Notes under the pieces: model-generated
Told to the model about the DNA's origin: nothing
Database searches by the model: none
The model's input: only the letters and a program-made list of their open reading frames with translations
Position numbers and translations under genes: made by a program
Source: Raja brachyura
Lineage: Eukaryota
DNA: 64,000 bases
Direction: 5' to 3'
Assembly: GCA_963514005.1 (NCBI GenBank)
Contig: OY740826.1
Location: forward strand, 2,542,001-2,606,000
In this document: positions 7,454 through 64,000 of the stretch, in pieces
How the letters are laid out: each line of letters starts with the position of its first letter
How positions within the stretch are numbered: the stretch's first letter is position 1

Positions 7454-7454
7454 C

Positions 7455-19107: not shown

Positions 19108-19170
19108 CAAGAGAAAACATGAAGGGGTAAATCAAATCCACGAGCTTCTGAAAGGTATAAACGGTAGTCT
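19108..19170 (-). CDS. 63-bp exon 2 of the IZUMO-like gene, copy A
   Basis: Pyrimidine tract + tatacag acceptor and G|gtaagt donor; phase 1-1; ETTVYTFQKLVDLIYPFMFSL. Confidence 0.65.
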
Positions 19171-19488
19171 CTGTATAGACTAATGGAAGAGAGAGAGAGA
19201 GACAATGCTGATAAAGCCGGGAGCCGTGGGGTTATCTGAACACAATTAGCTTCTTCCCCACTAAACCCAAACACGTCCACTCTCTCCAGCACATGCTGAC
19301 TATTCCCAGGGTACAAATGTCTGCTTAATAACCCGATGCTCCCTTCCTCACCGCCCCTCCCTCCCTCCGCTATCCATCCCCCTTCCTCTCCCCATCCCTC
19401 CCAACCTACCCTCTCTCTCACTCTTCCTCCCTCCCCCCCACTCTCTCCCTCCTTCCTCTCTCCCTCCCTCACTCCCTCCCCCTCCTAC

Positions 19489-19865
19489 CCATATTTAAGT
19501 CCTTGGAGTAAGTGATAACCGGGTCCAGCTGAGTGGAACATTCGTCCTCAGAAGCCACGATCAGACGCGGTTGACAAAAATGCTGGAGAAACTCAGCGGG
19601 TGAGGCAGCATCTATGGAGCGAAGGAATAGGTGACGTCGCCTACTCCTTTGTTGCATAGATGCTGCCTCACCCGTTGAGTTTCTCCAGCATGTTTGTTTA
19701 CCTTTGATTTTTCCAGCATCTGCAGTTCTTTCTTAAACATCAACAGCGGTTCATCAGGTCCAGGAACTTGGACCAGAGCCGGCGGTCGCAGTTCATACAA
19801 GCGCAGCCCCTGTGAGCCAACACGGCGAGGAGGAGAAACACAGAAGCCAGATTATTCTGGGACAT
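19489..19865 (-). pseudogene. IZUMO/SPACA6/TMEM95-like exon 1, copy A (inserted hairpin, premature TGA)
   Basis: MSQNNLASVFLLLAVLAHRGCACMNCDRRLWSKFLDLMNRC then TGA at the insertion edge. Resumes QPRLIVASEDECSTQLDPVITYSKDLNM; donor G|GTAGGA. Confidence 0.6.
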
Positions 19866-20371
19866 CTTGACCTCGGCGCTGGCTGAAAAACCTTCTCGCC
19901 TTGTGGGCGACATCGTCCGAGAACATCCCCGACGTCAACAAAGGTCTCCAGGATGTCCCGTCACAAACACCAACCCACGCCCCGACACAAACATTGGAGA
20001 CACAGAGTGCTGGAGTAACTCAGCGGGACAGGCAGCATCTCTGGAGAACACGGATAGGGAGAGGGAAGGGGGGGGGGGGGGGGAGAGAGAGAGAGGGAGG
20101 GCGGAGGGAGGGAGAGAGGGATGAGAGGAAAGGGCAGAGGGAAGGAGGATGGGAGAGGGGGAGGGAGGGAGGGGCGGTGAAGAGTGGAGCATCGGGTTAT
20201 TACACAGACATTTGTACCCTGGGAATAGTCAGGATGTGCTGGAGAGAGTGGACGTGTTTGGGTTTAGTGGGGAAGAAGCTAATTGTGTTCAGATAAGCTC
20301 ACGGCTCCCGTCTTTATCAGCATCGACTGTCTCTCTCTCTCTCTCTCCCTCCCTTCCATTAGTCTATAGAG

Positions 20372-20427
20372 ACACTATGGTTTATACCTTTCAGAACCTC
20401 ATGGATTTGATTTCATGTTTTCACTTG
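20372..20427 (+). pseudogene. Inverted exon-2 copy with 7-bp deletion
   Basis: Homologous to 19108-19170; 56 bp. Paralog at 61706-61761. Confidence 0.6.
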
Positions 20428-21718
20428 GTAAGTAAATACAAGCCTTCAATGCCTTCAATCGGTACAAAGTGCTGGAGTAACTCAGCGGGTCAGGCAGCAT
20501 CTCTGAACTCGGATAAGTACAGAGATGAGGGGGAGAGAGGGGGCGAGAGAGGGAGGGCAGGAGGGAGAGGGAGGCTCCCCTCCCTCCCTCGCCCCCTCTT
20601 ACCCATATTTAAGTCCTTGGAGTAAGTGATAACCGGGTCCAGCTGAGTGGAACATTCGCCCTCAGAAGCCACGATCAGACGCGGTTGACAAAAATGCTGG
20701 AGAAACTCAGCGGGTGAGGCAGCATCTATGGAGCGAAGGAATAGGTGACGTCGCCTACTCCTTTGTTCCATAGATGCTGCCTCACCCGTTGAGTTTCTCC
20801 AGCATGTTTGTTTACCTTTGATTTTTCCAGCATCTGCAGTTGTCCCGTCACAAAGACCAACCGTGGCCCCGACACAAACATTGGAGACACAGAGAGCTGG
20901 AGTAACTCAGCGGGACAGGCAGCATCTCTGGAGAACACGGATAGGGAGAGGGATGGGGGAGGAAGGGAGGGATTGAGGAGGATGGGAGAGGGGGAAGGAA
21001 GGGAGGGAGATGAAGGAAGGAGGAGGGACCGAGGGAAGGAAGGGAGGGGCGAGATGGATGGTGGGAGGGAGGGAGAGAGAGAAGGAGGGAGAGAGGAAGG
21101 GAGAGAGGGAGGGTATAGGGAAGGAAAGGTAGGGACAGAGGGAAGGAGGGGAGAGGGAGAGAGGGAGGAAGGGAGGGGGAGAGGGAGGGAGGGTGGGGAG
21201 AGACGGAGTAGAGGGGTGAGGGATAGGGAGGGGCGGAGCGAGAGAGGGAGGGAGGGAGGGAGCGAGAGAGGGAGCAGGGAAGGGAAGGATGGAGGGAGGG
21301 GCGGTGAGGAGTGGGGGCATCGGGTTATTAAACAGACAATTATCAAACAACAGACAAATACAACAGGGATGAGGGAGAGAGAGGAAGGGAGAGATGGAGG
21401 GAGGGAAGGAGGGAGGGAGGGAGGGAGGACGAGAGGGAGGGGGAGACGAGACGGAGTGATGGAGAGAAGGAGGAGGGAGGGAAGGAGGGAGAGAGTGAGG
21501 TTGGGAAGGGAGGGAGGGAGAGAGAGAGCGAGGAAGGGGGAGAGGGAAGGAGGATGGGAGAGGGGGGAGGAAGGGAGGGGCGGTGAGGAGGGAAGCATCG
21601 GGTTATTAAACAGACGTTTGTACCCTGGGAATAGTCAGGATGTGCTGGAGAGAGTGGACGTGTTTGGGTTTAGTGGGGAAGAAGCTAATTGTGTTCGCAT
21701 GACCCCCACGGCTCCTGT

Positions 21719-21897: not shown

Positions 21898-21900
21898 CAG

Positions 21901-21963
21901 AGACTATGGTTTATACCTTCCAGAAGCTCATGGATTTGATTGACCCCTTCATGTTTTCACTTG
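21901..21963 (+). CDS. Inverted intact exon-2 copy
   Basis: cag|AGACT...CTTG|gtaagt, 63 bp; ETMVYTFQKLMDLIDPFMFSL. Confidence 0.55.
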
Positions 21964-38911: not shown

Positions 38912-39414
38912 CTGGAGAGGGAGAAACAAGACATGAAAGAGTTGTGAATCTGTGCAATTCTCTGTCACAGAAGGCAGTAGAGTCCAATTCACTGGATTTT
39001 TTTCAAGAGAGAGTTAGATTTAGTGCAAAGGGCCAAAGGAATCAAGGGATATGGGGAAAAAGCAGGACTCGGGGGTACTGATTTTAATAGATCAGCCAAG
39101 ATCATATTGAATGGTGGTGCTGGCTTGATGGGCCGAATGGCCTACTCCTGCACCTATTTTTCTACGCTTCTAGGAGATCAAACGCAAAATGCTGGACTAA
39201 ACTCAGCGGGACAGGCAGCATCTCTGGAGAGAAGGATCTGCCTCCATCACTGCCCTTAGCAGCGTGTTGCAGATGCTCTCCATGGTCTGTTAAACAGTTT
39301 ACCAGGAATACAAGTACCTTATACAAATAACATCAGTCTGAATCAGTCTCACCCCAAAACGTCACCTATTCCTTCCCTCCAGGGATGCTGCCTGTCCCGC
39401 TGAGTTACTCCAGC

Positions 39415-39790
39415 AATAACCAACCAGATCTCCCAGTGGCCCAGCACTTAAACTCTTCTTCACATTCTGAATCTGACCTTTCTGACCTGGGCTTCTCCAT
39501 GGCCAGAGTGAGGCCCACTGTAAATTGGAGGAGCAGCACCTCATATTTTGCTTGGGCCGTTTACACCTCAGCGATATGAACATTGACTTCTCTAATATCA
39601 GGTAGTCCCGGCTTTCTCCTCTCCTTCCCAGCTCTCCCTCAGCCCACTGTCTCCGCCTCTCCCTTTCTTCTTCCCGCCCCGCCCCACCCTCACATCAGTC
39701 TGAAGAAGGGTCTCAACCCGAAATGTTGCACATTTCCTTCGCTCCATAGATGCTGCCTCACCTGCTGAGTTTCTCCAGCATTTTTGTCTA
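39415..39790 (+). mobile_element. Penelope-like element 3' end with hammerhead core
   Basis: PVAQHLNSSSHS...KLEEQHLIFCLG..MNIDFSN; ctgaaga-a-gggt..accc-gaaa at 39700. Further copies at 41430-41945 (-) and 44220-44765 (-). Confidence 0.8.
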
Positions 39791-39822
39791 CTACAGCATT
39801 TTGTGTCTATCTTCAGTAAACG

Positions 39823-40436
39823 GGACTGATCCAAGAACGCTGAGGCCCTGTACAAGAAGGAACAGAGCTTTCTGAGAAGGCTCTGCTCCTTCAACATCTG
39901 CAGCAAGATGCTGCAGATGTTCTACTAGTCGGTGGTGGCCAGTGCTATCTTCTTCGCTGCCGTGTGCCGGAGCAGCAGGGCGAAGGCTGCGGATTCCAAT
40001 GGGATCGACGAGCTCATCAGGAAGGCCGGCTCCATCCTGGGAGCGGAGTTGGATTCACAGGAGGTTGGTCTTGGAGGGGAGGATGCTCCTCAAACTGTGG
40101 AGCATCCTGGACAATACAGCTCACCTCCTCCGTGACACATTGGTCAACCTGAGGAGCACCTTCAGCAACAGACTGGTTCCACCAAGATGCAGGACAGAAC
40201 GCCACAGGAGATCCTTCTTCCATGTGGCTATCAAACTGTACAACTCCTCCCCCTTCTGTCGTAGTGTAGACTGAGACTGACTCGCCTCCCCACCACCCCC
40301 CTCCCACGTAATCTTTGCACAGCCCCCAAGCCTTTCCACTCGTCACTTTAATTTCATATTTCAAGTATTTTGTGTTTGTGTATTTTGTGTTTTTAGTATT
40401 CTCCTGGGATAAATAAAGTTCTATCGTGTCGTATCG
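39823..40436 (+). mobile_element. Rex1-type LINE 3' end
   Basis: FLRRLCSFNICSKMLQMFY..VVASAIFFA and RCRTERHRRSFF..AIKLYN; AATAAA + (tatcg)n. Confidence 0.8.
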
Positions 40437-41203
40437 TTTTGTAAAAGTTGCCCCGCACATCTCCTTTACCATTTTCCGCTTTCACCTTAAAGCTCTGCCC
40501 TCTCAACCTTGACATTTGCACCACGTGAAAAAGATTCTGACTGTCTACCTTCTCAATGCAACTCATAGTTCTATATATTTCTGTCAGGTCTCCCCTCAGC
40601 CTTTCAACTGGGTGGTGAATCTGTGGAATTCTTTGCCACAGACGGCAGTGGAGGCCAAGTCAGTGTCCACGCCGACCAGCGATCCCCACACACTTGTACT
40701 ATCCTGCACACACTAGGGACAATTTACAAATATACCAAGCCAATTAACCTGCACACCTGTGCATCTTTGGAGTGTGGGAGGAAACCAGAGCACTCGAAGA
40801 AAACCCACGTAGGTTATGGGATGAAGTTGCAAACTCCGTACCGACAAGCACCCGTAGTGAGGATTGAACCCGGCTCTCTGGTGCTGTGAGGCAGCAACTC
40901 TAGCGTTGAACCACTGTGTATCCCCCTTAAAACTCCTTATTGGTAATACTCTCTAATCCAGGCAGCGTTCTGCACCCTAACGCATCATTCCTGTAATGGG
41001 GTGACCAGAACTGCACACAATGCTTCAAATAATTTTATCTAATCTTCCTCATCTTAGAAGAGGAGAGAGGAAATATAGGAAAGATGGTGTCAAGCAGGAA
41101 TGGAGCAGAGAAGATTTATGAGGATGTGGCCGGGACTAGAGGGCCTGAGCTATAGGGAAAGGTTGAGCAGGCCAGGACTCTCTTCCTTGGAGCGCAGAAG
41201 AAT

Positions 41204-41280
41204 GGAGTTTCCTTCCTTTATACTGACCCAGGAATTGTTCACGTTGTTGGGGGAAGTGATTGAGAGATTCTGGGGGACGT
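41204..41280 (-). pseudogene. Truncated Ig exon of the Siglec-like gene, cut by a CR1 fragment
   Basis: Acceptor ctgtttgcag; YVPQNLSITSPNNVNNSWVSIKEGNS runs directly into CR1 sequence, which supplies a stop. Confidence 0.7.
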
Positions 41281-42155
41281 CTGCAAACAGATAACATTCT
41301 GCAACCAGTTTTGCAGCAGTTCCGTGATCCTGGTAAAATACTTTAGTCTTCAGACTTTAGAGATACACTGCGGATGTAGGCCCTTCAGCCCACGGAGTCC
41401 GCGCCCACCATCGATCACGCGTTCACACACGAGTTTATTTAAGGAAATGAGAGACATAGACGATGGTGTAGAGAGATATAGAACAAAGAATGAAAGATAT
41501 GCAAAAAGTTAACGATGATAAAGGAAACAGGCCGTTGTTAGCTGTTTGTTGGATGAGAACGAGAAGCTGATGCGACTTGGGTGGGGGAGGGATGGAGGGA
41601 GAGGGTAGCCAGGGCTACTGGAATTTAGAGAAATCAATATGAATACCACTGGGCTGTAAACTGCCCAAGCAAAATATGTGATGCTGATCCTCCAATTTGC
41701 ATTTAACCTCACTCTGACAATGGTGGTGTGCGAGGAATGAAAGTTCAGTGTGGGAATGGGAAGCAGATTTGATGTGTTTAGCAACCAGGAGATCAGGTAG
41801 GTCCTACATCTCTCTACATCATCGTCTATATCTCTCCTTTCCCTTTCCCGTGACTTTCCCTGAAGAAGGCTCTCGACCTGAAACATCACCCATTCCTTCT
41901 CTCCAGAGATGCAGCCTGTACTGCTGAGCTTCTCCAGCTGTTGGTGTTGATTTGATTAGTACGGGTGTCAGTGGATATGGGCAGAAGGCAGAAGAAAGTG
42001 GTTAGTAGAGAGAGATTGATCAGCCATGATTGAATGGTAGAGTAGAGTTGATGGGCCGAATGGCCTAATTCTGCACCTATCGTCTGTGACCTTATATACC
42101 AGCACTGCTAATAGATTATTGCTGTTCCTGCACAATAAACGATCTCCGTACTTAC

Positions 42156-42449
42156 ATTGCACAGTCAGTGTGAGGGTCTGCTCCGATGACACAGTTGGGT
42201 ATCTGACTCTGCAGGTGAGGTTTTGCCCGTGATGTTTGAGCGCTGGGGTCAGGGACAGAACAGAAGTATATGTCAGAGTGTCACCCTGCTGAGTTACGCT
42301 GTGTGAGGCTGACGGTGGTTCATCAGCGGGGGTGACCCAGGTTAAGGTGGGTGCCGTTCCATCACACGTGGTGTTGAAGGAGCAGGTCATGATCCCAGGC
42401 TTTCCTGCCACCAATTCAGCAGGGAATATCGTGGGTTTATCCGTGAAAT
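42156..42449 (-). CDS. Siglec/MAG-like receptor, C2-set Ig exon
   Basis: DKPTIFP..LVAG....TCS...CDGTAPTLTW...SVLSLTP..KHHGQNLTCRV; 294 bp, phase 1-1. Confidence 0.92.
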
Positions 42450-42998
42450 CTAACACACAGAGAAACAAATACTTTTAGTTAAATATCACTGGATACATCG
42501 GTTCACATCGAAATCCCAGTCCCACATGAGCAAGAATGATTTTACAAGGTACAGAAGTGTGAAAACGCCCACCTCCAGATTATCAAGGATACGTCTCACC
42601 CCCGGTCACTCCCTTTCCTCCTCTCTCCCATCGGGCAAAAGGTACAGAAGTGTGAAAACGCACACCTACAGATTCAGGGACAGTTTCTTCCCGGCTGTTA
42701 TCAGGCAACTGAATCATCCTACCACAACCAGGGAACGGTTCTGAACTACTATCTGCCTCAGCAGAAAGACTATGCATGATTGCAATCGAGCCATTTGCAG
42801 AGTATGGATACGTGATAAGGGAATAACGTTTAGTGCAAGGTAAAGCCAGCAAAGTCCAATCAAGGATAGTCCGATGGGTCACCAGTGATGTCGACAGTAG
42901 TTCAACACTGCTCTCTGGTTGTGGTAGGATGGTTCAGTTGCCTGATAACAGCTGGGAGAAACTGTTGAGTGAATGAGTGAATTATACAGAGCACTTAC

Positions 42999-43364
42999 CA
43001 GTAACACTGAGCTGTGTTACAGAGTGGTAGCTGTAACGATCTCCCCCTCCAAATTCAACTCTGAAAAAATAAGGACCTGCATCTTGCTGCGTGACGTTGT
43101 CTATAACCAGGGAACAGTCGTTGTCTCTCAGGATTCCTGACAGCCGGGTCCGATAGTGAAACTTTGTTGATTCTACGCTGGGAATCCCGGAGTGGAAGGC
43201 CACAGAATCTTTGTTGTTCGACTCTCTTTTATACCAGATTCCAGTCCGTGGTTTATTGTCCAGTTTCGACGGGTACCTGTAGTGACACGGAATCCGTGCA
43301 CACAAACCATTCTGCGCTGTCACTTTTAGTGGAGTGTCCGCACCCCACTCTCCCGACATCACGG
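42999..43364 (-). CDS. Siglec/MAG-like receptor, V-set sialic-acid-binding domain exon
   Basis: GLCARIPC, GIW, DCSL, DAGPYFFRVE (essential Arg) and RYSY; 366 bp, phase 1-1, canonical splice sites. Confidence 0.92.
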
Positions 43365-43497
43365 CTGAGGAGAGAAGGAACAATCTTTAGCAGTGAACAC
43401 CCTGTCAGTTCACTGGGCTTTCCACACCTTTTATCCTGCGCTGTGGACCTGGTGTGAACAGAGCGTAGAAGAGCGGCATGGTGGCGTAGTGGTAGAG

Positions 43498-44032
43498 CCT
43501 CCCTCCTCACCGCCCCTCCCACAGTGCATCACTCCCTCCTCACCGCCCCTCCCACAGTGCATCACTCCCTCCTCACCGCCCCTCCCACAGTGCATCACTC
43601 CCTCCTCACCGCCCCTCCCACAGTGCATCACTCCCTCCTCACCGCCCCTCCCACAGTGCATCACTCCCTCCTCACCGCTCCTCACACAGTGCATCACTCC
43701 CTCCTCACCGCCCCTCCCACAGTGCATCACTCCCTCCTCACCGCCCCTCCCACAGTGCATCACTCCCTCCTCACCGCCCCTCCCACAGTGCATCACTCCA
43801 TCCTCACTGTCCCTCCCACAGTGCATCACTCCCTCCTCACCGCCCCTCCCACAGTGCATCACTCCCTCCTCACCGCCCCTCCCACAGTGCATCACTCCCT
43901 CCTCACCGCCCCTCCCACAGTGCATCACTCCCTCCTCACCGCCCCTCCCACAGTGCATCACTCCCTCCTCACCGCCCCTCCCACAGTGCATCACTCCCTC
44001 CTCACCGCCCCTCCCACAGTGCATCACCCCCT
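43498..44032. repeat. 33-bp minisatellite (~16 copies) in the Siglec intron
   Basis: Unit actccctcctcaccgcccctcccacagtgcatc. Confidence 0.95.
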
Positions 44033-44868
44033 CCTTTGCTACACATTATTCCATCTGCCACTTCCCTGCCCACTCTCCCAACTTGTCAAAGTCCTTCTGC
44101 AGAGTCCCTGCTTTCTCTGCACCACCAGCCCCTCCACCGATTTTCGTATCATCTGCAAACTTGGCCACAAAGCCTTCAATCCCCTCGTCCAATCATTAAT
44201 ATACAACGTGAAGATTAGTGGTGCACAAGAAAGAACTGCAGATGGTGGTTTAAACCGAAGATAGACACAAAAATCGGTATTATCTCAGCGGGACAGGCAG
44301 CATCTCTGGAGAGAAGGAATGGGTGACATTTCGGGTCGAGATCCTTCTTCAGACTGAACGTCACGGGAAAGGCAAACGAGAAATATAGATGATGATGTAG
44401 AGAGACAGAACAATGAATGAAAGATATGCAAAAAAGTAATGATAAAGAAAAGAAGCCATTGGTAGCTTTTTGTTGGGTGAAAACGAGAAGCTGGTGGACT
44501 TGGGTGGGGGAGGGATAGAGAGAGGGGGAATGCCAGGGTCACTTGAAGTGAGAGAAATCAGTATTCATATCACTGGGTTGTAAGCTGCCCAAGCAAAATA
44601 TGAGATGCTGCTCCTCCAATTTGCATTTGGCCTCTCTCTGCCCGTGGAGGAGGTCCGGGACAGAAAGGTGTGTGTGGGAATGGGAAGGGGAATTAAAGTG
44701 TTTGGCAACCGGGAGATCAGGTAGGTCCAGGCGGACTGATCGAAGATGTTCAACAAAACGATCGCAGTGGCCCCAGCACCGACCCCTGCGGAACTCCGCT
44801 AGTCACTGGCAGCCAACCAGTAAAAGCCTCCTCGCCCGTAAACACTTCTGAGTTGCTGCTGATGGTAC

Positions 44869-44908
44869 CTTGGAGAAGGGAGAGGAGGAAGAACGATCTC
44901 CCGATCAT
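44869..44908 (-). CDS. Siglec/MAG-like receptor, signal-peptide exon
   Basis: MIGRSFFLLSLLQ + G|gtacca donor (phase 1). An upstream acceptor at 44950 implies a non-coding first exon. Confidence 0.75.
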
Positions 44909-50682: not shown

Positions 50683-53420
50683 TAAGTAAATAAGTAAGTA
50701 AGTAAGTTTATTGGCCAAGTATTCACGTACAAGGAATTTGCCTTGGTGCTCCGCCCACAAGTAACAACATGACATACAGTGACAGTTACGAATGACTCAG
50801 AAAACACTAAACATTAACAATAATAATAATAAAACATTAATGATAAAACACCACTGATCAAGCATGAGAACCAACAAAATACCAGATCAAAGGGAGGCTA
50901 CAGATTTTTCGCTGTTGAGTAGGGCAACTACTCGTGGATAAAAACTGTTTTTGTGTCTGGCTGTGGCAGCTTTGACAGTCTGGAGTCGCCTTTCAGATGG
51001 AAGTGATTCAAAGAGTATGTGGCCAGGGTGAGAGGGATCAGAGATGATTTTGTCCCCTCGCTTCCTGGCCCTTGCAGTGTACAGTTCATCAATGGAGGGA
51101 AGGTTGCAGCAAATAACCTTCTGAGCTGATCGGACAATTCGCTGCAGCCTCCAGGTGTCGTGCCTGGTGGCTGAGCCAAACCAGACCATGATGGAGAAGG
51201 TGAGAACAGACTCTACGATGGCCGTGTAGAACTGGACCATCATTGCAAGTGGCAGATTGTGTTTCCTCAGCTGCCGTAGGAGTACATCCTCCGTTGTGCT
51301 TTTTTGACTGTGGAGTCGATGGTAGCCCCCCACTTAAGGTCCTTCGAGATGATGGTTCCCAGGAACTTCAAAGATTCTACAGATGTGACTGTGGTGTTGT
51401 TGATGGTGAGTGGGGTGACAACGTCTAGAATCAATTCCACTGTCTTAAGAGATTTGAGCTCTAGGTTGTTGCGATGGCACCAGGACACCAGCTGTGACTC
51501 TTCCTGTCTGCAGGCAGATTCCTCCCCATTCTGGATCAGTCCAATCAGGGTTGTGTCATACGCAATCTTGAGAAGCTTGACAGAGGTGTCTGTGGGGGTG
51601 CAATCGTTGGTGTAGAAAGAGTAGAGGAGAGGAGAGCGCCTTGCGGTGCTCCTATGCTGAGCGCTTCCGGGTCCGAGATGTGCTTTCCCAGACTCACATG
51701 CTGCTTCCAGTCTATCAGGCTGCTGGTGATCTACCGACAGAGGGGTTCAGGCACAGTCAACTGGGAAAGTTTGGAGTGTAATAGCACTGGCACAATGGTG
51801 TTGAATGCGGAACAAAAATCAACAAACAAGATCCTCGCATAGGTCCCCTGGCGGTCTAGGTGCTGTAGGATAAAGAGCAGGCCCAGGTTGACTGCATCAT
51901 CCACATATCTATTGGCCCGATATGCAAACTGCATAGGGGGATCGTGATATTTTTCAGCTTGGCCAGCACAAGCCTTTCAAGTGTCTTCATGACCACAGAG
52001 GTCAGTGCAACAGGCCTGTAGTCATTAAGACAAGTAATCCTTGCCTTTTTGGGCAAAGGGACAAGAGTGGAGACTTTGAAGCAGGCAGGGACAGTACATG
52101 TTTGAGGAACTGGTTAAAAATGTCTGTATAGACCGTTGGTTGGCACAGAGCTTAAGAGTAGAGGGGGAAACATAATCAGGTCCTGGAGATTTCCGGCTTT
52201 TTTGTCTTCTGAAAAGCCTCTCCGCCTCCTCTATTTTTATTGTTGATGAAGTGATGTTGTTCAGCAAGGAGGGTGTGGGTAATTGGGTGTGAAGTGGTGA
52301 TTGGCGGGGGGTGGGTGTAGAAGGGCCCAGTCTTTGCAGACTGAGGTCAGGCTGTGAGTGGGTGTGAAGTGTTAGTGTGGGAAATGGTCCAGTCTTTTCA
52401 TACTGCAGTCTTGCTTCAAGTAGGTGTGGAGAGGTGAATTGGAAGGAGAGGGTGCTGGGTCCATTCTTTGCAGAATGGGGTCTGGCTGTGTTAGTTGGGG
52501 AGGGGGGGAGAGGGGGAGAAGGGGAGGGTGTACCAGGGTTACGTTTCTGATTTTCAAACCTGCAGTAAAACTCATTCAGGTCATTGGTCAGCTGATGATT
52601 GTCCATAGAGCGGGGGACTTTCCTCTTGTAGCTGGTAATTTCTTGCAAGCCCTTCCAAACTGAAGAGTCTCTAGCTGAGAACTTGCTCCTCAACTTCTCA
52701 GAGTAACTTTCGTTGGCAGCTCTGATTCATCTTCTCAGCTTATACTTGGCCTGCCTGCAGAGGTCTGCATCCCCGCTTCTGTAGGCCTCCTTTTGAGACC
52801 GTTGGAGCTGTCTGAGTTCTGCAGTGAACCAGGGCTTGTTGTTGTTGAACCATGTCCGGGTCTTAGTTGTAATGCAACTGTCCTCGCAAAAGCTGGCATA
52901 TTATGATACAGTGCTGCCTCCACTTCGCGGTCCGCTCTGTGAAGTTGGTAGCCAGCCAGTTGCAGCGCGCTGTCGGGGGTCAACTCACAAAGCCAGGTCT
53001 CGGTGAAACACAGGGCAGCAGCTCGAGAGAAGTCCTTGTTTGTCCGATGCAGGAGTTGCAGTTCGTCCACTTTGTTCTTGAGAGAACGTACGTTTGCCAG
53101 GAATATGCTGGGGAGTGGTGTGCGTGATCCTCCTCGCGGAGTCGATGAGTGCTCCAGAACGCTTCCCACGGGTCCTCCTCCATATCAAGACCTTGAATGC
53201 AACTACAGTCCCACCGACGAGTATGTCCAAATAATCCAGCGAGTGAGAGAAATCCGGAACGATGTTTGGAGGCACCGTATGTCCGATGTTTATGAATACA
53301 TCTCTCATGAAAGTAATCTTTGTAGAGTTTTCACAGACGACACAAATGAACAAACACATACAAAACAGCAAGGAGCAGTACACCGTGGCCGCCATCGTCG
53401 GCGCCAGCAGCAGCTGCACT
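50683..53420 (-). mobile_element. Rex1/Babar-type LINE (RT retained, part of APE deleted)
   Basis: [22 protein letters not shown] and FVDFCSAFNTI, plus C-terminal FYTAIVESVLTFSI; deletion at ~52912. Confidence 0.9.
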
Positions 53421-53895
53421 GCAAACAGCTACACTGCAAGCAAGCTAACCCATTTAACCCCAGATGGGGCATGACTTTGACTTATTGGAGGGAGTGCTGT
53501 ACTGTGGGAAGAGTCCCTCACTATCTCTGCAAACCTATTCTGGCCGTGATCCTATTTCTGGTCTCTGCAATCCCCTCCCCACCAGCCCCGACACCTCTCC
53601 CTGTCAAATTGGAGGTATTTAATCTAACGGGTGTGCCAGCTTCCAGTTCCACAGTGCCATGGTTAGGTTGCTCATTTGGATAAGAATGCACTGATTCAAG
53701 AATTGTTTAGGAAAGAACTGCAGATACTGGTTTGGACAGGCGGCATCTCTGGATAGAAGAAGGATCTCGACCCGAAACATCACCCATACTTTCTCTCCAG
53801 AGATACTGCCTGACCCGCTGAGTTACTGATTCAAGAATGTCTGGAATTGTGCAAGGCAAGTTTGCTGAATTAACTATGCAAAGCTTTATAATGAA

Positions 53896-55440
53896 CTAGA
53901 CCAAGTTCAGACCCGTTGGATCTGTTCCCCCAACGTGCGGTTGCAGGGGAGGGAGGGCGGGGCAGCATGTCCCTGAGGGTGGGTGAGGGGGGTAGAGAGG
54001 GGCAGGGTAAGGGAGAGGAGAGGGGAAGGTGAGAGGAGAGGGGTTATGGGGAAGAGGGGAGGAAAAGGAGGTGAAGGGGAGAGGAGAGAAAGAGAGGTGG
54101 GGAGGGGAGGGAGAGGGGGAGAGTGGGGAGTGAGGGGAAGAGGGGTAGCAGGGAGTGGTGCAAGAGCGAGGGGAAGGGTGTGGGGGGGTGATGGGGATGA
54201 AGAGGGTGGGGGAGAGTGGGGGTGGGAGTGGTGAGGAGAGTGGGAGGTGGAGAAGGGGAGAGGGAGGAGGAGGGGGGGTGGGGGAAGGTGTGAGAGGGTT
54301 CAGGGAAGGGTTGAGAGAGGGGTGGGAGGGGAAGGGGAGAGAGGGGGGAGAGTGTGGAGGGAGGGTGAGAGGGGTAGGGGAGAGAGAGGGAAGAGTGGGG
54401 GGAGGGGGAGAGTGGTAGGGGAGGGGGAAGAGTGAGGAGGGAGGGGGAAAGCAGAGAGAGGGGGAAGAGTGGGGAGGGGAGGGAAGGGAGGGGGGAGAGA
54501 GGGGTGGGGGAGGGAGGGGGAAAGGTGGGGAATGGGGGAGAGAGAAGTGGAAGTGGGGAGGGAGGGTGAGAGGTGTAGGGGAGAGTGGTGGAAGTGGGAG
54601 AGAGGGAGGGGGAAGGGGGAGTGGTGGAAGAGGGAGAGAGGAGTAGGGGAAAGGGTGGGGGAGCTAGGGAGGGAGGGGAGAGAGAGGGTGGGGGAGGGAG
54701 AGAGGTGGGGTGGGAGGGGGAGGGAGGGGGAGAGGGGTAGGGGAAGTGGTACAGTGCCCCCCTAGTCACATGTGTGGGGGATATTAGGTGGTACAGAGTC
54801 CCCCTAGTCACATGTGTGGGGGAAGTGATACAGTGTCCCTCTAGTCACATGTGTGGGGGAAGTGGTACAGTGTCCCCCTAGTCACATGTATGGGGGAAGT
54901 GGTACAGAGTCCCTCTAGTCACATGTGTGGGGGAAGTGGTACAGTGTCCCCCTAGTCACATGTGTGGGGGAAGTGGTACAGAGTCCCCCTAGTCACATGT
55001 GTGGGGGAAGTGGTACAGTGTCCCTCTAGTCACATGTGTGGGGGAAGTTGTGCAGTGTCCCCCTAGTCACATGTGCAGGGGGGGGGGTGGGGCAGCATGT
55101 CCCTGAGGGTGGGTGAGGGGGTTAGAGAGGGGTGTGGTAAGGGGAAGGGGAGGGGAGAGGAGAGGGGAAGGTGAGAGGAGAGAGGTTATGGAGAAGAGGG
55201 GTGGAAAGGGAGGTGGAGGGGAGAGGAGAGGCGGAGAAACAGGGGTAGGGGAGAGGTGGAGAGAGAGTGGAGGGGGAGGGAGAGAGAGTGAAAGGAGAGG
55301 GAGAGAGGTGTGGAGAGAGAGGGGGTGAGAGAGGAGGGGGAGAGAGAGGGAAAGGAGAGGGGGAGAGGTGGGGAGGGGAAGGAGAGGGGAAGAGTGGTGA
55401 GTGAGGGGAAGAGGGGTAGCAGGGAGGGGTAGCAGGGAGT
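53896..55440 (-). mobile_element. Non-autonomous Helitron 3' portion (paralog of 12528-14200)
   Basis: Same hairpin + CTAG|T end. Confidence 0.6.
54743..55075. repeat. ~37-bp minisatellite, ~9 copies (paralog)
   Basis: Same unit as 13507-13840. Confidence 0.95.
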
Positions 55441-57011
55441 CCTCCTCGCCATATGAGCCTCTGCCTGAGGCTGTTTGGGGAATCCTAGGGGCATGCGACC
55501 CCGATTGGAATACTTCATGGCTCATCATTGTCTGAAGCATTCTTTCCATTTGATCTAGACATCCCCATACCTTCTTGTTGGAAGGAGGGGTCTTCTTCAT
55601 CAGACTCGTCAGGTAAAATGGGCCTGACAGATTTCCGGTTGGCCTTTCTCCCTGCTGGAGTGGCCTCAGCACCCTGAGGCAACGGAGTTAATGGAGGCAG
55701 TTGAGCTGCCGGCAGTTCTGCAGTCGGTGTCGGTAGCCGGTATCTCCCTACCCGATCCGCAAGCACTAACCGTGGTCCCGCGAGTTAAACTCCTGCTACG
55801 GACGGCAGACTTTTTCGCAACTTTCTCCATTCTCTAATGACTGCCGCTGGCTCCTGAGCCAGTCTCACGGAGTTTAAATACCCGCAGAAAGTTTTGAAAT
55901 CACTTACCTGCCGGTTTACTACTTACCGCTTGTGGAGCTGCGCTCTCCAGCCCGTCGGTGTGCCATGCGTTGGACGTAATGACGCACATGTGCCTGGCGG
56001 GGCTTCTTCACGTAGTCACTCACGTGACTCCGAAGTAAAATTGGCTACAGGTGCCATTACATTTTACATTCTGATCTACACAAGCAGAGCAGACCAGGGG
56101 TGGCAGGATTTAAGATCATTTTCGGATACCCCACGGTCTCACGACTATGTGGGAGGGCAGGCTTGCTATATTATATCCAGGCCACCAGAATCCTAAGAAG
56201 TGTGGAATCAGCATTGTTTATTAATCGACAAACAACCACACAAGGGAAGGTTGGTTCAGATTATTTCAAGGTGGCTGCAGCAGGTTCTGGTTTATGCAGG
56301 TACTAACACTGACGATTGTATATCTCATTCCACCAGGGCAGCATCAACGTCAGCGGCCAGGGCAATGGACATTCCCATCGACCATATCCTCGCGACCGCA
56401 GGATGGTCAACTGAATTGTTTTTTAATTTTATTTTTACCATAGGCCGGTTACTGACCCGGGGTTTTTTGCCCATTCTGTTTTGCATCTACTTTAGCCTCC
56501 CCTGAGATACAGGGGTTGCTATTGATTTCTTTATTAACGTAAAGCATTAATACATTTGAATCAATATCATGTTTAATGCATTTTTTTGATTATTCACTCA
56601 TCCTGACATTGATTATTCAATAAATGCAGTGAGACGCCGAGATTTGGATCTGCGGCATGATATCACAAAGCTTCAAACCCTTCACGGAATCACACACGTG
56701 ACTCCGAAGTAAAATAGTAAGATTAAATGAGAACTTACCAGTTTGAAGTTTGATCTTGATTTTATGAATCGTTACATTGGTGATTACATGCCCTCCACGC
56801 CCAACCCCCTCTCATAAAGGTCATCTGGCAGTTCTTGAGTAACGCATCTTACTATGTCACTTTGGTAATTGTTATTTGTGATTTCATACCGCTGCTTTGA
56901 AGATTCACGCGCATGCGCACTGGTGGGGTTCTTCACGTAATCGCCAACGTAACTCCTCATAAAATCAAGATCAAACTTCAAACTGGTTAGTTCTCGTTTA
57001 ATCTTACTATT
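55440..57011. mobile_element. Paralogous DIRS 5'(-) / 3'(+) fragment pair
   Basis: Near-identical to 14200-15792. Confidence 0.85.
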
Positions 57012-60000
57012 TTCCCCAATAAATAACCCGTGCCTGCCTTCTCCGCATATCCCTTGGCTGCACTCACCCCAAGAGCTCTATCTAACTCCCTCTTAAATCC
57101 ATCCAGTGATTTGTCCTCCACTGCCCTCTGTGGCAGGGAATTCCACAAATTCACAACTTTCTGGGTGAAAACATTTTTTCTCACCTTCGTCTTAAATGGC
57201 CTCCCCTTTATTCTAAGACTGTGGCCCCTGGTTCTGGACTAAATAGTATCAGGATTAATCTTGCACCTGCTCCACTATTAGATGACCATGACTGATTAGT
57301 TTTAGTTTAGTGTAGTGAAGATAGACACAGCGCAGAAACAGGACCTTCGGCCCACCGAGTCAGCATCGACCAGCGATCCCCGCACACTACACACACCATG
57401 GACAATTTTATATTGAAGTCTCGTGATGAGGCTGCATGAAGAACCTGCCAGCTCACATGCGCGTCAATACGTCGTCGATGGCGCGGGATTTGGAGGCATT
57501 CGAAAATGAAAAATGAAAAGATATATTTGAGAATGTTGATTTATTTTACTTTTCATTCCTTTTCTGTTTTCTTTTTCCTCTTTCAATTGAGTTCAAGATG
57601 CTGAAAAACCTGAAGCAGGTGAATCACCTCAAGAGACAGTTCCTGATGGTGAAGCAGATGATCCGGTTCCAAAGCGACTGCTTCGATCCATGACAAGTGA
57701 TGGTCAACAAACATGGACATGGGTGGAAAATTGTAGGTGGTGAATTGGACATTGACTAGGGTGATCTGCTTCCAGCCTCAAGCATCTTGCTAGAATTAAC
57801 CTACTGTTCATGCAAGAAACAAACTGAGAAATCAAGTGCAGGGAAAGGAAGATGCTCATCAACAGCATGGTGTGCCATGTACAGATTTATGTAAGTGTGT
57901 TGACTGTAGAAACTCTATTACTGCAAAAGACTTGGAATCTGATGAAGAATATTCAGATGAAGATCAGATGTAATGTAAACAAATAAATTGGGGGAACTAA
58001 ATGATTATATAAAGTTTTATTTTAATGTCGCTCGTTTCACTGGGGGCGCTGTACTGACAGCAGCCTCTGCCTGCAGCCCGTTTGTTTTTCCATCTTTTTT
58101 TAATTTTTAGTCAGTTTCAGGTTTGTTTTTGGGGGAGTCTTTAACTTTTATATGTGGGGGAGGTGGGCAGGGTAAGGGGGAAACTAACTCCAAGTCGCTT
58201 CCTGGCGGCAACGCGACTATTTCTCCGAGTCGCGTCCTCGCCCCCAACAGCATGGCCGACAACCGGGATCGGAGCGGCCTTTCCTGCCGGGGACCAGGAA
58301 CCGGACCAGAGCTACAATAGTGGCGGCGCGGCGCTGGAGTCACCGCGGAGTGGGCGATGCCTACCTGGATCGCCGCTTGGAGCTCCGGAGAGTTGGGCCG
58401 CTGCTCCAACGCCGTGAAGCTCTGGTTTGGAGAGCTTCCAACGCGGGCAGCGCTGAACAACTCTGTGGAGTCCTGGGGCCATTTGCCGAGGAGTTCCAGC
58501 GTTGCATCTCCACCCGGCGCGCCCTGTGGACTTTGGGAGCCGCAGACTCCGGTATGAGGGGGCAGACTCGAGGTCCAGGCCGCTGAGGACATCCCCCAGC
58601 CCCGACGTCAGACTTACATCACCCCGGCGAGGGGGCCTGAACATCGGGCCGCCCGTAGCGGCGACTGCGGATTGCTCGGGGAGGCCCCGACCACGGGTGA
58701 ACAGTGGGAACATCTGAGGAAGAGACCGACTTTGGTGCCTTCCTTCACTGTAGGAAATGTTGATCCTGCTGTGTGGGGATGTTTTATGTCGAATTCTATC
58801 AACTCTATGTTGTGTTCTTTATTTTGCTGTGTGGCTGCATGGTGATTTCATTTCACTGCGCCAATTGGCACACGTGACAAATAAATGTATCTTGTTGTAT
58901 CTTGTATCTCTTCACTGTTTATTTGGTCAAATTATTTAAACAATGAGTGAATTACTTATGATAATGGCGTGCTGGTGAATGACAGTGCGACAGTCCACCC
59001 ACCCATCCACAAATACATACATACACACATCCACACACACATCCATCTGTACGCACACTTCCATGCATGCACACACATACATGTACACATACATCCACAC
59101 ACACATCCACACACACATCCACACATCCATCCACACATATGCATCCACACACATACACATACATCCCCACACACATATGCATCCACACACACACACACAT
59201 ACATCCACACACACACATACACATACATCCACGCATACATCCACACATACATCCATTCACACACACATACATCCACACATTTACATCCACACATCTATAG
59301 ATACACGTTTGACAGGTATACACAGACACACACACAAACTACAGATACTCAAACAATGAAACACATTTAGGGTTCTTTTAGGTTAAAGGTAATAGCCCTC
59401 ATTTGCAAAGGCATAGGCTCATTTGCAAAAAATATAGGCTCATTGTAGCTTAAAATGAATACTCATTGAGTAAACATCAGAGCATTCGATTCTTGGTCAG
59501 GATGTGACATTTACATCAGAAATAAGACTTTACTCTTGCAAGTCTGTCTCCCAACCTGGCACTGCCCCAGTCCCACTATGGCCGTGACCCCCACTCTCCC
59601 CACTGGCAATCAGTGGGGTTCAGTAAACGGGGGAACCCAGAGAATTTGTCCTGACCCTTTAATTACGCAGGTTCATGAGCCCTTAAAACCTGGGACCTCT
59701 GCGGCAGTCTCATTCATTTTCCTATTGAAGCGACTGGAAGATGCCCTGCAGGACAGTCCCCCAGCCTGGCACTGCCCCAGTCCCACTATAGCCGTGACCC
59801 CCACTCTGCACACTGGCAGTCAGTGGGGTTCAGTAAAGGGAGGAACCCACAAGAACTGCCCTCACCCATTAATTAGGCTGGTTCAGGAGCCAGACCTCTG
59901 CAGCACTCATTCAAAAAACACACACAATTATATTCATTATATTATATTTATATCATATAGTTATACTTAATTATATGTGATTACAGCCATATTCACAAGT

Positions 60001-60415
60001 CATATATATATATAGGTATAATAATGTATAGTTTAAATGGACTGCAACACAGAAATAGGCTATCAATGGTGTAATATGGGTATTGTCCAATAGACGGCGC
60101 TGACTTTCCCGATCTCATTTTCTGGGCTGAGGGTCCAATATTCCAGTCGACATCGCTCAGTGCATCCTGCAGCATGGCCTCTGGATGGTCAGACCACCGC
60201 TTTATGTCCCTCGTCACTGCCGCTTCCCGTACTATCCGTTCTTTATACTCCGGCAGCAGATAAATGGCAGCGTGGTCAGATTTCCCAAAAGGAGGGAGAG
60301 AAACGGCCTTGTAGCCTTCCCTGAACGGCGTGTAGCAGTGGTCCAAAGCTCTCCCCCCCTGGTGACTCCAGCACTTTGTACCTATTGAAGGCAGTGAAGG
60401 CTTGTATTTACTTAC

Positions 60416-60478
60416 CAAGAGAAAACATGAAGGGGTAAATCAAATCCACGAGCTTCTGAAAGGTATAAACGGTAGTCT
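60416..60478 (-). CDS. 63-bp exon 2 of the IZUMO-like gene, copy B
   Basis: Same as 19108-19170; canonical splice sites in frame with exon 1. Confidence 0.65.
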
Positions 60479-60816
60479 CTGTATAGACTAATGGAAGAGA
60501 GAGAGAGGGACAATGCTGATAAAGCCGGGAGCCGTGGGGTTATCTGAACACAATTAGCTTCTTCCCCACTAAACCCAAACACGTCCACTCTCTCCAGCAC
60601 ATGCTGACTATTCCCAGGGTACAAATGTCTGCTTAATAACCCGATGCTCCCTTCCTCACCGCCCCTCCCTCCCTCCGCTATCCATCCCCCTCCCTCTCCC
60701 CATCCCTCCCAACCTACCCTCTCTCTCACTCTTCCTCCCTCCCCCCCACTCTCTCCCTCCTTCCTCTCTCCCTCCCTCACTCCCTCCCTCCCTCCCCCCC
60801 CCCCCCCCCCTCCTAC

Positions 60817-61194
60817 CCATTTTGAAGTCCTTGGAGTAAGTGATAACCGGGTCCAGCTGAGTAGAACATTCGTCCTCAGAAGCCGCGATCAGACGCGGTT
60901 GACAAAAATGCTGGAGAAACTCAGCGGGTGAGGCAGCATCTATGGAGCGAAGGAATAGGTGACGTCGCCTACTCCTTTGTTGCATAGATGCTGCCTCACC
61001 CGTTGAGTTTCTCCAGCATGTTTGTTTACCTTTGATTTTTCCAGCATCTGCAGTTCTTTCTTAAACATCAGACAGCGGTTCATCAGGTCGAGGAACTTGG
61101 ACCAGAGCCGGCGGTCGCAGTTCACACAAGCGCAGCCCCTGTGAGCCAACACGGCGAGGAGGAGAAACACAGAAGCCAGATTATTCTGGGACAT
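60817..61194 (-). CDS. IZUMO/SPACA6/TMEM95-like exon 1, copy B (interrupted by a Penelope-derived hairpin, ~60904-61070)
   Basis: ATG with A at -3; signal peptide; CVNC-x14-C-x11-C once the insertion is removed (TGTC repeated at both insertion edges); donor G|GTAGGA. Confidence 0.6.
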
Positions 61195-62503
61195 CTTGAC
61201 CTCGGCGCTGGCTGAAAAACCTTCTCGCCTTGTGGGCGACATCGTCCGAGAACATCCCCGACGTCAACAAAGGTCTCCAGGATGTCCCGTCACAAACACC
61301 AACCCACGCCCCGACACAAACATTGGAGACACAGAGTGCTGGAGTAACTCAGCGGGACAGGCAGCATCTCTGGAGAACACGGATAGGGAGAGGGAAGGGG
61401 GGGGGGGGGGGGGGGGGGAGAGGGAGGGAGGGAGGGAGGGAGAGAGGGATGAGAGGAAAGGGCAGAGGGAAGGAGGATGGGAGAGGGGGAGGAAGGGAGG
61501 GGCGGTGAGGAGGGGAGCATCGGGTTATTACACAGACATTTGTACCCTGGGAATAGTCAGGATGTGCTGGAGAGAGTGGACGTGTTTGGGTTTAGTGGGG
61601 AAGAAGCTAATTGTGTTCAGATAAGCTCACGGCTCCCGTCTTCATCAGCATCGACTGTCTCTCTCTCTCGCTCTCTCACTCCCTCCCTTCCATTAGTCTA
61701 TAGAGACACTGTGGTTTATACCTTTCAGAACCTCATGGATTTGATTTCATGTTTTCACTTGGTAAGTAAATACAAGCCTTCAATGCCTTCAATCGGTACA
61801 AAGTGCTGGAGTAACTCAGCGGGTCAGGCAGCATCTCTGAACTGGGGTGGTGAGAGGGAGGGAGGAATAGAGGGAAGGAGGGAGAGAGAGAAGGAGAATG
61901 GAAGGGAGAGAGGGAGGAAGGGAGGGGGACAGTGGGAGTAGAGGGGGTGTGGGTGAGGGAGGGAAGGAGAGAGGGAGTGAGGAGAGAGAGAGAGAGAAGG
62001 AGGGACAGAGGAAGAGATTTATTGTGAGTGGGACGTTAGATTTGGAGGGAGAGAGAAGGGAGGGATGGAGGGAGGGTCGGTGAGGAGTGGGGTCAACAGG
62101 TTATTAAACAGACATTTATCAGACAACAGACAAAGACGATAGGGATGAGGAGAGAGAGGAAGGGAGAGAGTGAGAGAGGGAGGGAGAGAGTGAGAGAGGG
62201 AGAGCAAGAGAGAGGGGGGAGGGGAGAGGGAGTGATGGAGAGAGGGAGGAGGGAGCGAGTGAGGTTGGGATGGGGGAGAGGGAAGGTGGATGGGAGGGAG
62301 GGGGGGAGCGGTGAGGAGGGGAGCATCGGGTTATTACACAGACGTTTGTACCCTGGGAATAGTCAGGATATGCTGGAGAGAGTGGACGTGTTTGGGTTTA
62401 GTGGGGAAGAAGCTAATTGTGTTCGCATGACCCCATGGTTCCCGTCTTTATCAGCATTGACTCTGTCTCTCTCTCTCTTCCTCTCTTGCATTAATCTATA
62501 CAG

Positions 62504-62566
62504 AGACTATGGTTTATACCTTCCAGAAGCTCATGGATTTGATTGACCCCTTCATGTTTTCACTTG
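62504..62566 (+). CDS. Inverted intact exon-2 copy (paralog of 21901-21963)
   Basis: Canonical AG/GT boundaries, 63 bp. Confidence 0.55.
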
Positions 62567-64000
62567 GTAAGTACATACAAGCCTTCACTGCATTCAATAG
62601 GTACAAAGTGCTGGAGTAACTCAGCGGGACAGGCAGCATCTCTGGAAGAACAGGTGATGTTACAGAAGGGTCCCAACTCGACATTTGGGGAATGAAGAAC
62701 CTGAGGACATAGGGTTAATATGAGGGGGGAAAGATTTAATAGGAACTTTTTGGAAACGTTTTCATTCAGAGGGTGGTGGGTGTATGGAACAAGCTGCCGG
62801 TGGAGGTGATTGAGGCAGCAACTACAAAAGACATTGGGCAGGTACACGGATATGACAGTTTGGAGGGCTTTTGGACCAAACACAGGCAGGTGGGACTGGT
62901 GTAGCTGGGACATATTGGCCAGTGTGGGCAAGTTGGGCCGAAGGGCCTGTTTCCACGCTGTGTGACTCTAAAACAAAAGGGACCACAATGAGATAGATTG
63001 GAAGGTTGGGAAATTGATCTCTAAGTGATATGGCATGGAAACAGGCCATTCAGCCCTACTTGCCCACACTGGCCAACATGTCCCATCTGCACTAGTCCCA
63101 TCTGCCTGCGTTTGGTCCATATCCAAATGTGTCCTATCCATGTACCTGTCTAACGGTTTCTTAAACGTAGGGATAGTCCCTGCCTCAAGTACCTCTTCCG
63201 CCAGCTCGTTCCGTGCACCCCCCACCCTTTGTGTGAAAGAGTAACCCCTCAGATTCCTATTAAATCTTTTCACCTATGTCCTCTGGTTCCACTACTCGGG
63301 CCAAGAGATTCTGAGTGTCTACCCGATCTATTCCTTTTATTATTCCCCCCCCCCCCCCCCCGTCCCCTTATAAAATCACCCCTCATCCTCCTGCACTCCA
63401 GTAATCTGATAACAGAGGGGATGAATCCTTTCCTGAATCTGGCGGTCGCTCTTTCAAGCTTTTGTATTTAGATTCGTACAGTTTAGTTTAGAGATACAGT
63501 GTGGAAACAGGCCCTTCGGCCCACCGGATCAGTGCTGACCAACGATCCCCGCACACTAACAATATTCTACACACACTAGGTACAATTTTTAAAAACATTT
63601 ACACCAAGTCGATTTACCTACATACCTGTACGTCTTTGGAGTGTGGGAGGAAACGGAAGATCTCAGAGAAAACCCATGCAGGTCACGGGGAGAACGTCCA
63701 AGCTCCGTATTGTCAGCACCCGTAGTCGGGATCATAGAAACATAGAAAATAGGTGCAGGTGGAGGCCACTCGGCCCTTTCTCACCTCAGTCTTAAATGGC
63801 TTCCCCTTTATTCTAAGACTGTGGCCCCTGGTACTGGACTCACCCAACATTGGGCACATTTTTCCTGCATCTGGCTTGTCCAGTCCTTTTATAATTTTAT
63901 ATGTTGAAGGATGAGAAGGGATCGAACCTGGGTCTTCGGTGCTGCATTCGCTCTAAGGCAGCAGCTCTACCGCTGTGCCACCATGCCTTCTGAGGGGAGA

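Follow-up and report, generated by a model that had tools for sequence, protein, structure and literature searches.

Does a highly repetitive stretch of skate DNA hold part of a real gene, and to which family would that gene belong? The question was raised by 64,000 nucleotides (nt) of Raja brachyura (contig OY740826.1, positions 2,542,001 to 2,606,000 of the forward strand). This whole stretch is referred to as the window, and all coordinates below are positions within it. A preliminary description, made from the letters only, had placed a hidden gene on the minus strand at 60416-61194, had read it as a signal peptide plus CxxC helical protein, and had assigned it to the superfamily of IZUMO1, SPACA6 and TMEM95 (the IST superfamily). 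The gene proved to be real, as shown by intact homologues in public data and by an assembled contig that has neither the intron nor the repeat that interrupts exon 1. What the window itself holds is two broken duplicates of the gene's 5′ end (copies A and B), probably pseudogene fragments, together with degenerate inverted copies of exon 2, and the gene from which they derive is a cartilaginous-fish gene with a probable IST architecture, closest to the TMEM95 type that has no immunoglobulin (Ig) domain.

Exon structure and splice junctions of copy A

Translation of copy A starts at ATG 61194 on the minus strand. An additional upstream ATG lies in frame at 61242, and the 5′ untranslated region extends at least to 61350. 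The coding sequence reads MSQNNLASVFLLLAVLAHRGCA-CVNCDRRLWSKFLDLMNRCL(I), a hydrophobic leader followed by CVNC; the open frame from this ATG begins MSQNNLASVFLLLAVLAHRGCA-CVNCDRRLWSKFLDLMNRC and is then interrupted by the inserted element. After this element the frame picks up again as ...LIAASEDECSTQLDPVITYSKDFKM, up to the GT donor of intron 1. The preliminary description had located the ATG, the leader with its CxxC motif, the insertion, the donor and the end of exon 2 (60416) correctly on the minus strand. Two of its junctions had to be moved.

The first concerns the insertion, which had been given TGTC edges. TGTC is present at both edges, but the real target-site duplication is the 13/14-bp AACCGC(T)GTCTGAT, found in copy A as AACCGCTGTCTGAT (61080-61067) and AACCGC-GTCTGAT (60900-60888). 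Since the true duplication differs from TGTC, the residues 'QPR' of the earlier translation are an artefact. Removal of the repeat body and one duplicate gives ...LMNRC-LIAASEDEC..., identical to the intact homologues, and the spacing following the first CxxC, previously stated with x11, becomes CxxC-x14-C-x8-C.

The second is the acceptor of exon 2, previously set at 60478. The AG at 60489-60488 is the one in use; exon 2 begins 9 nt earlier, at 60487, and gains the residues VYT. This placement was made because three sources agree on it: the depth arithmetic of the X1 contig, the sequences of P0001 and the shark proteins, and the catshark isoform P0007, which skips exactly these 24 residues (all described below).

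Support for genuine, spliced exons

Four public sequencing runs were compared with the window by contig depth in 36-nt bins. None of the runs recorded as RNA was found to contain the stretch in the run search. In run X1 (organism A), a 1353-nt contig with a depth of 43.4 was identified, the last 285 letters of which correspond to 61067-61350. A depth of 43.4 was also recorded over 60822-60875 (bin 60840-75 in full and half of bin 60804-39). Over exon 2, bin 60444-79 was covered in full (43.4), bin 60408-43 for 28/36 of its length (33.8; from 60416) and bin 60480-515 for 9/36 (10.9; to 60488), and there was no X1 contig depth over intron 1. On the simplest reading, a single contig joins the repeat-less exon 1 to exon 2 without the intron and continues for ~900 nt. 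It differs from the window at ~3% of positions, and the differences N5S and V24M, with T to M and V to M in exon 2, are residues of the intact homologue P0001. The contig records mature junctions, whether it stems from mRNA or from a retrocopy.

The 5′ part of exon 1 alone (exon 1a, 42 aa) was searched with HMMER against 1.84 billion proteins and matched P0001 at E = 4.9e-16, with 88% identity to P0001 residues 17-58. A region as repetitive as this one, in which the exon-2 unit is present six times and in both orientations, might be expected to contain open frames that are part of no gene. Such chance frames are excluded by the E-value of this match and are refuted further by the alignment of both exons with annotated shark proteins and by splice sites that agree with the annotated exon-skipping isoform P0007 and with the intron-less contig. 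The intact homologues and the intron-less, repeat-less contig bear out the claim that a hidden gene here encodes a signal peptide and a CxxC helical protein.

An intact gene family in sharks and skates

P0001 is an intact protein of 265 aa from a public assembly. Further members were collected by word searches based on shared 5-residue words, first with P0001 and later with a family profile. P0004, also a public assembly protein, has an alternative 5′ end in which a different 5′ sequence is joined to exon 3. The remaining members are all annotated as 'uncharacterized protein' and come from sharks: P0005 from Heptranchias perlo, the two isoforms P0006 and P0007 from Scyliorhinus torazame, and the partial P0008 from Mustelus asterias. 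These shark members (P0005-P0008) are 53-71% identical. Catshark isoform X2 (P0007) is without exactly the 24 residues of exon 2, and in the alignment this fixes the exon boundaries independently. Skipping of exon 2 in P0007 would take out most of one predicted helix. Together, P0007 and P0004 suggest alternative 5′ processing of the gene.

The searches were of limited reach. No members were found beyond cartilaginous fishes by the 5-residue-word search, and the exhaustive search was made with 42 residues only, so that absence elsewhere is not shown. A word search with exon 1a, restricted to proteins of 55-175 aa, returned no relative; P0001, with its 265 aa, lies outside that range.

The family has a constant order: signal peptide, C-x2-C-x14-C-x8-C, 60 residues, C-x3-C-x10-C-x-N-C-x6-C-x5-C, a variable basic linker, a transmembrane (TM) helix and a short tail. 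From the alignment and the cysteine count, the gaps between the ten cysteines (2,14,8,60,3,10,2,6,5) are invariant in skate and sharks. CVNC or CMNC follows the hydrophobic leader in the window copies, P0001, P0005 and P0006, and a conserved NCS sequon sits inside the second CxxC (CxNC). The TM helix and tail are nearly invariant (...KWRVAEMIMFPMIAILLIGLVAVL...GFRYLKDE..VVPTY). From skate to sevengill shark, conservation in the family is highest over the C-terminal 60 residues (TM helix and cytoplasmic tail), far above that of the ectodomain. This conservation suggests a conserved partner within the membrane. As judged from these sequences, the intact gene lies elsewhere and is predicted to encode a type-I membrane protein of ~205-250 aa. 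The exons that the preliminary description had missed, and for which it had predicted a second Cys pair and a TM segment, are represented in the intact protein by a second CxxC, the hinge cysteines and one TM helix.

Disruption and duplication of the window copies

The element that splits exon 1 is a genuine dispersed repeat. It is self-complementary: two 67-nt arms, 87% complementary, meet without a spacer at the perfect centre of the palindrome. Its core motif has 20 occurrences in the window against 0 expected. In the four runs its summed contig depth was ~1e5-1e6, compared with tens for the flanks, and many contigs break at its edges (61067/68 and 60897-60905). The insertion adds 179 nt to copy A and 178 nt to copy B, where the left target-site duplicate has a 1-nt deletion. 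Neither length is a multiple of 3 and the frame of exon 1 is broken; after the frame shift a stop codon is met inside the repeat, and the open reading frame (ORF) ends in ...SFAP. As the same repeat insertion is found in both full modules, it is older than the block duplication.

The coordinates of the exons, their copies and the associated repeats are collected in Table 1. Each of the two duplicated blocks contains one exon 1 - repeat - intron - exon 2 module and two inverted exon 2 copies, one with the 7-nt deletion and one with the acceptor AA. In block 1 there is also an extra partial copy, from which exon 1a is deleted (the equivalent of 61056-61282 is gone). The block copies flank a Siglec/MAG-like gene at ~30084-44908 (minus strand). 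The assembly gap at 21719-21897 consists of 179 N and interrupts one inverted exon 2 copy and its intron.

Table 1. Positions of the gene fragments, the inserted repeat and the duplicated blocks in the 64-kb window. LINE, long interspersed nuclear element; SINE, short interspersed nuclear element.
Feature	Position	Strand	Details
Copy A exon 1, 5′ part	61067..61350	-	Sequence; X1 contig depth; P0001 match
Palindromic SINE-like repeat with target-site duplication (copy A)	60888..61080	-	Body 61066-60901 (166 bp); duplicates 61080-61067 and 60900-60888
Copy A exon 1, 3′ part	60817..60887	-	(L)IAASEDECSTQLDPVITYSKDFKM, then G; GT donor 60816-60815; tblastn, X1 depth
Copy A intron 1, GT...AG	60488..60816	-	Mostly purine-rich low-complexity; zero X1 contig depth
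Copy A exon 2	60416..60487	-	72 nt, 24 codons, VYTETTVYTFQKLVDLIYPFMFSL; phase 1 at both ends; acceptor TTAG, donor G/GTAAGT
Copy B, exon 1 - repeat - intron - exon 2 module	19108..19913	-	97.6% identical to copy A; ATG 19865, repeat body 19738-19573, exon 1 end 19489, exon 2 19179-19108
Inverted extra exon 2 copy	62495..62566	+	With part of intron 1 (62148-62628); acceptor AG to AA; Y to D
Inverted degenerate exon 2 copy	61697..61761	+	Unit 61385-61823; frame-shifting 7-nt deletion
Block-1 counterpart of degenerate inverted exon 2	20363..20427	+	Identical 7-nt deletion
Block-1 counterpart of second inverted exon 2	21898..21963	+	First 6 nt lost in N gap 21719-21897
Extra partial copy, block 1	20575..20841	-	Exon 1 3′ part (20678-20604) and most of repeat
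Duplicated block, ~11.5 kb	11552-23053 and 52913-63659		88-97% identity, self-megablast
LINE (L1/Tx1-like endonuclease) fragment	59993..60355	-	ORF ...LDHCYTPFREGYKAVSLPPFGKSDHAAIYLLPEYKE...; adjoins exon 2 downstream; ends the exon-2 repeat unit at 60355

A tblastn search of the 64-kb window with the intact family found no exon 3 or later exon, and only exons 1 and 2 were recovered, in several copies. A weak tblastn match at 23135-23227 (E 0.1-0.8) was considered as the start of exon 3 and was set aside as a chance match, being without cysteines and on the wrong side of copy B. The preliminary description had regarded the copies as locally amplified, possibly fragments of a parent locus elsewhere, and within the window this agrees with the several exon 1 and exon 2 copies and with the failure of tblastn to find exon 3 onward. 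With exon 1 thrown out of frame by the same repeat insertion in copies A and B, and with no exon from the third onward in the window, the copies are most likely pseudogene fragments: truncated, repeat-disrupted duplicates that comprise only the 5′ portion of the gene, from the upstream region through exon 1 and intron 1 to exon 2.

A working 5′ end among the window copies, most plausibly copy B (19865-19108), with later exons beyond the window start and the repeat either removed or tolerated, is very unlikely. Both main copies do retain the ATG, open exon halves and a canonical donor and acceptor; moreover, introns may reach considerable length in skates, and downstream of copy B the window covers no more than 19 kb. 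However, the lengths of the insertion and the stop within the repeat are contrary to a functional exon 1, and no canonical GT/AG pair was found whose use would excise the insertion precisely. LINE and DIRS-like elements fill the region downstream of copy B, with no family exon there. The X1 intron-less contig, ~3% different from the window, is without the repeat. In addition, DNA-like contigs of the window's own organism contain a 93%-identical exon 1a that diverges from the window exactly at the repeat edge. These contigs suggest a parent locus elsewhere that is free of the repeat, the diverged copy they carry being probably repeat-free.

On the pseudogene reading, the segmental duplications from which the local array of Siglec-like genes arose appear to have taken the fragments with them and rearranged them. 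The window copies themselves are of lesser weight: they are 5′-exon modules that were duplicated and then broken in unstable repeat arrays of the skate genome.

Structure prediction, profile searches and superfamily assignment

The shark and skate family can be placed in the IST superfamily with good confidence: the cysteine framework supports membership, and we infer the fold. Members of this superfamily carry one CXXC immediately behind the signal peptide, on a short helix at the N-terminus, and another at the tip of the hinge hairpin (PMC9482655). Their fold is a distorted bundle of four helices, which pack in alternating antiparallel and parallel fashion and form a triangular face (PMC9482655). 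Two AlphaFold runs placed four helices ahead of a beta-hairpin at the second CxxC, with the TM helix last, a result to be read at the level of secondary structure only and at low confidence. The predicted strands around the second CxNC are E139-143 and E146-150 in model 1 and E123-126 and E129-132 in model 2. Among the protein-language-model neighbours of P0005, IZUMO3 came first (0.95 and 0.94), followed by TEX51 (0.92), TMEM95 (0.89) and IZUMO2 (0.84). With the ectodomain alone, the IZUMO cluster was still first at 0.82, a weak score that provides a lead only.

Several results weigh against the account given here. IZUMO (PF15005) and TMEM95 (PF15203) were unmatched in Pfam even at E <= 10, both with the window pieces and with five family members. 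IZUMO1, SPACA6 and TMEM95 were not found in PDB by phmmer or hmmsearch with P0001, P0005, P0006 and the alignment. Mean pLDDT (predicted local distance difference test) was 40.6 and 48.1 for the two AlphaFold runs, which used five-sequence alignments, and gave no confident 3D model; Foldseek and VIA-align on the better model returned generic helices only and nothing meaningful. Kit ligand (0.86) and Flt3 ligand (0.84) were also among the language-model neighbours of P0005, at lower rank. The type of run X1 is a guess ('probably DNA'), and its intron-less contig could be a processed retrocopy instead of mRNA. Finally, we infer the pseudogene status of the window copies, and the downstream exons of copy B could sit beyond the window start, >19 kb off.

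The Pfam miss lowers the case for membership and does not exclude it: known IST members are very divergent, and the superfamily is defined by structure. The proposal of IZUMO1/SPACA6/TMEM95 kinship in the preliminary description was thus strengthened by the cysteine framework and the language-model neighbours, and gained neither a Pfam match nor a confident fold from the checks that it had named.

The same searches bear on another explanation, in which the gene is real and does not belong to the IST superfamily. It could then be another disulfide-rich helical type-I membrane protein (a relative of Kit ligand, Flt3 ligand or CSF-1) or a lineage-specific protein, with a double CxxC that arose by convergence. 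The lack of a match to IST members in Pfam or among PDB sequences, the unreliable 3D models and the scores of the Kit ligand and Flt3 ligand clusters (0.84-0.86, and 0.78 for Flt3 ligand with the ectodomain alone) are in its favour. We nevertheless regard it as unlikely. All ten ectodomain cysteines occur in the TMEM95/SPACA6 order with nearly equal spacing, the predicted hairpin that contains the second CxxC bears a conserved sequon, like that of TMEM95, and the IZUMO, TEX51 and TMEM95 clusters rank above the cytokines. SCF-class helical cytokines contain four cysteines and are not known to carry a CxxC.

The other searches were uninformative. Pfam with the three exon pieces and the 100-aa ORF, and PDB phmmer with exon 1a, gave nothing relevant. 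The sole Pfam matches of P0001 and the family were Stevor (E 0.04-0.2, driven by the TM helix) and DUF5351 (E 0.09), neither of them relevant. Weak local matches in PDB (DENR zinc knuckle, troponin T, a TM peptide) were non-significant. In the hinge hairpin (P0005 116-136, P0006 115-137), 'YPVQVLYCxNCS' weakly resembles the CxxC zinc-knuckle hairpin of DENR (5ons_B; E 0.14-0.5, non-significant), which is probably a likeness in a common hairpin motif and nothing else. A mir-99/let-7/mir-125 cluster is located in human SPACA6; Rfam did not find this cluster in a search of the whole window.

Proposed role and significance

By analogy with IST proteins, the intact protein would adopt a type-I membrane topology, with the N-terminal CxxC helix stapled to the hinge hairpin by two CxxC-CxxC disulfides and a third disulfide clamping helix 1 to the next element. 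It may reside on the acrosomal or plasma membrane of sperm and may act in acrosome biogenesis, like IZUMO3 and TEX51, or in sperm-egg interaction, like TMEM95.

In cartilaginous fishes, the gene likely represents a hitherto unrecognised member of the IST superfamily, and its type is nearest to that of TMEM95. Its wider placement is a more tentative matter. TMEM95 has been traced back only to amphibians (PMC9482655), and fish orthologues have been listed only for IZUMO1, SPACA6 and DCST1/2, with none for TMEM95 (bioRxiv 10.1101/2023.07.27.550750). A literature search found no report of an elasmobranch IST protein or TMEM95. It is conceivable, at somewhat less than an even chance, that the family is the cartilaginous-fish counterpart of TMEM95 or a separate, unnamed Ig-less IST lineage, and that the TMEM95-type branch dates from the common ancestor of jawed vertebrates and not from tetrapods, as surveys suggest. 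If so, the Ig-less IST branch would be extended to the base of jawed vertebrates, and a candidate fertilization factor would be at hand in internally fertilizing elasmobranchs (catshark, skate). Proteins of sperm-egg fusion evolve so fast that sequence searches lose them.

Neighbouring features of the window

The Siglec/MAG-like gene at 30084-44908 (minus strand) includes a V-set exon ORF (42982-43383), a C2-set ORF (41968-42468) and an Ig-like ORF (38565-38987). Just upstream of the V-set exon lies a minisatellite (43499-44035) with a 33-bp unit in ~16 copies of ~97% identity, in which several frames are open (PSSPPLPQCIT...). The IST-like fragments are ~16 kb upstream and ~10 kb downstream of the Siglec-like gene, on the same strand. 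Human SPACA6 and IZUMO1/2 lie in the Siglec-rich region of chromosome 19q13, which makes the arrangement a possible synteny lead.

A DIRS-like retroelement occupies 1733-5349 (plus strand), with long ORFs of reverse transcriptase/RNase H and tyrosine-recombinase-like type. ORF fragments of an L1/Tx1-like LINE endonuclease were found on the minus strand at 7019-7972, 10939-12051, 18685-19047 and 59993-60355 (...LDQCYT..), and two of these abut exon-2 units. The fragment at 59993-60355 is presumably from a LINE, judging by its LINE endonuclease motifs. A TG/CA-rich simple-sequence tract (58950-59370) is open over long distances on both strands, with Cys/Val/Met or His/Thr codons.

Comparison with TMEM95, SPACA6 and the IZUMO proteins

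TMEM95, a mammalian sperm acrosomal membrane protein with a known crystal structure, has the disulfides C35-C45, C105-C134 and C109-C128; it lacks an Ig domain, and its beta-hairpin bears a conserved glycan (PMC9546558). Its ectodomain spans residues 17-138, with the glycan at N117 (PMC13192804). The shark and skate family shares its signal peptide, the CxxC at the mature N-terminus, the helical bundle and the beta-hairpin hinge (both predicted in the family), the single TM helix, the short tail and the missing Ig domain. It also has an extra cysteine pair past helix 1 (C-x8-C, 14 residues after the CxxC; C35-C45 in TMEM95) and a conserved N-glycan site in the hairpin, the NCS sequon. Counted from cysteine to cysteine, the intervals are 9 in the family and 10 in TMEM95 within the extra pair (C35 to C45), 61 and 60 from the extra pair to the hinge (C45 to C105), and, within the hinge, 4 and 4 (C105 to C109), 21 and 19 (C109 to C128) and 6 and 6 (C128 to C134). 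On the other hand, no sequence similarity between the two was detectable (PF15203). In the family, the linker that precedes the TM helix is longer than in TMEM95, and both this helix and the tail are much better conserved. Its sequon sits inside the CxxC, whereas that of TMEM95 presumably stands just before it.

All ten bundle and hinge cysteines of the family have counterparts in SPACA6, in the same order. In SPACA6 these are 27-CXXC-30, C41-C55, C124-C147, C128-C153 and 139-CXXC-142 (PMC9482655). The gaps are 2,10,13,68,3,10,2,4,5 in SPACA6 versus 2,14,8,60,3,10,2,6,5 in the family, and the hinge cysteines have the form C-x3-C ... C-x5-C around the second CXXC in both. Unlike the family, SPACA6 carries an Ig-like domain at the C-terminal side, ahead of its TM helix, and no sequence match was obtained.

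IZUMO3, IZUMO2 and TEX51, the Ig-less and testis-specific IST members, are of similar size and layout (signal peptide, bundle, hinge, TM helix). IZUMO3 and TEX51 act in acrosome biogenesis (PMC12615630). The family differs from IZUMO2 and IZUMO3 in having the helix-1/2 cysteine pair, and PF15005 was unmatched. IZUMO1 is without the helix-1/2 disulfide that SPACA6 has, and IZUMO2-4 are predicted to have the IZUMO1 disulfide pattern (PMC9482655). A specific relationship to TMEM95 within the superfamily is proposed tentatively, as a possibility that falls a little short of the balance. Since IZUMO1-4 have no helix-1/2 disulfide, the extra cysteine pair and the missing Ig domain point to the TMEM95 type.

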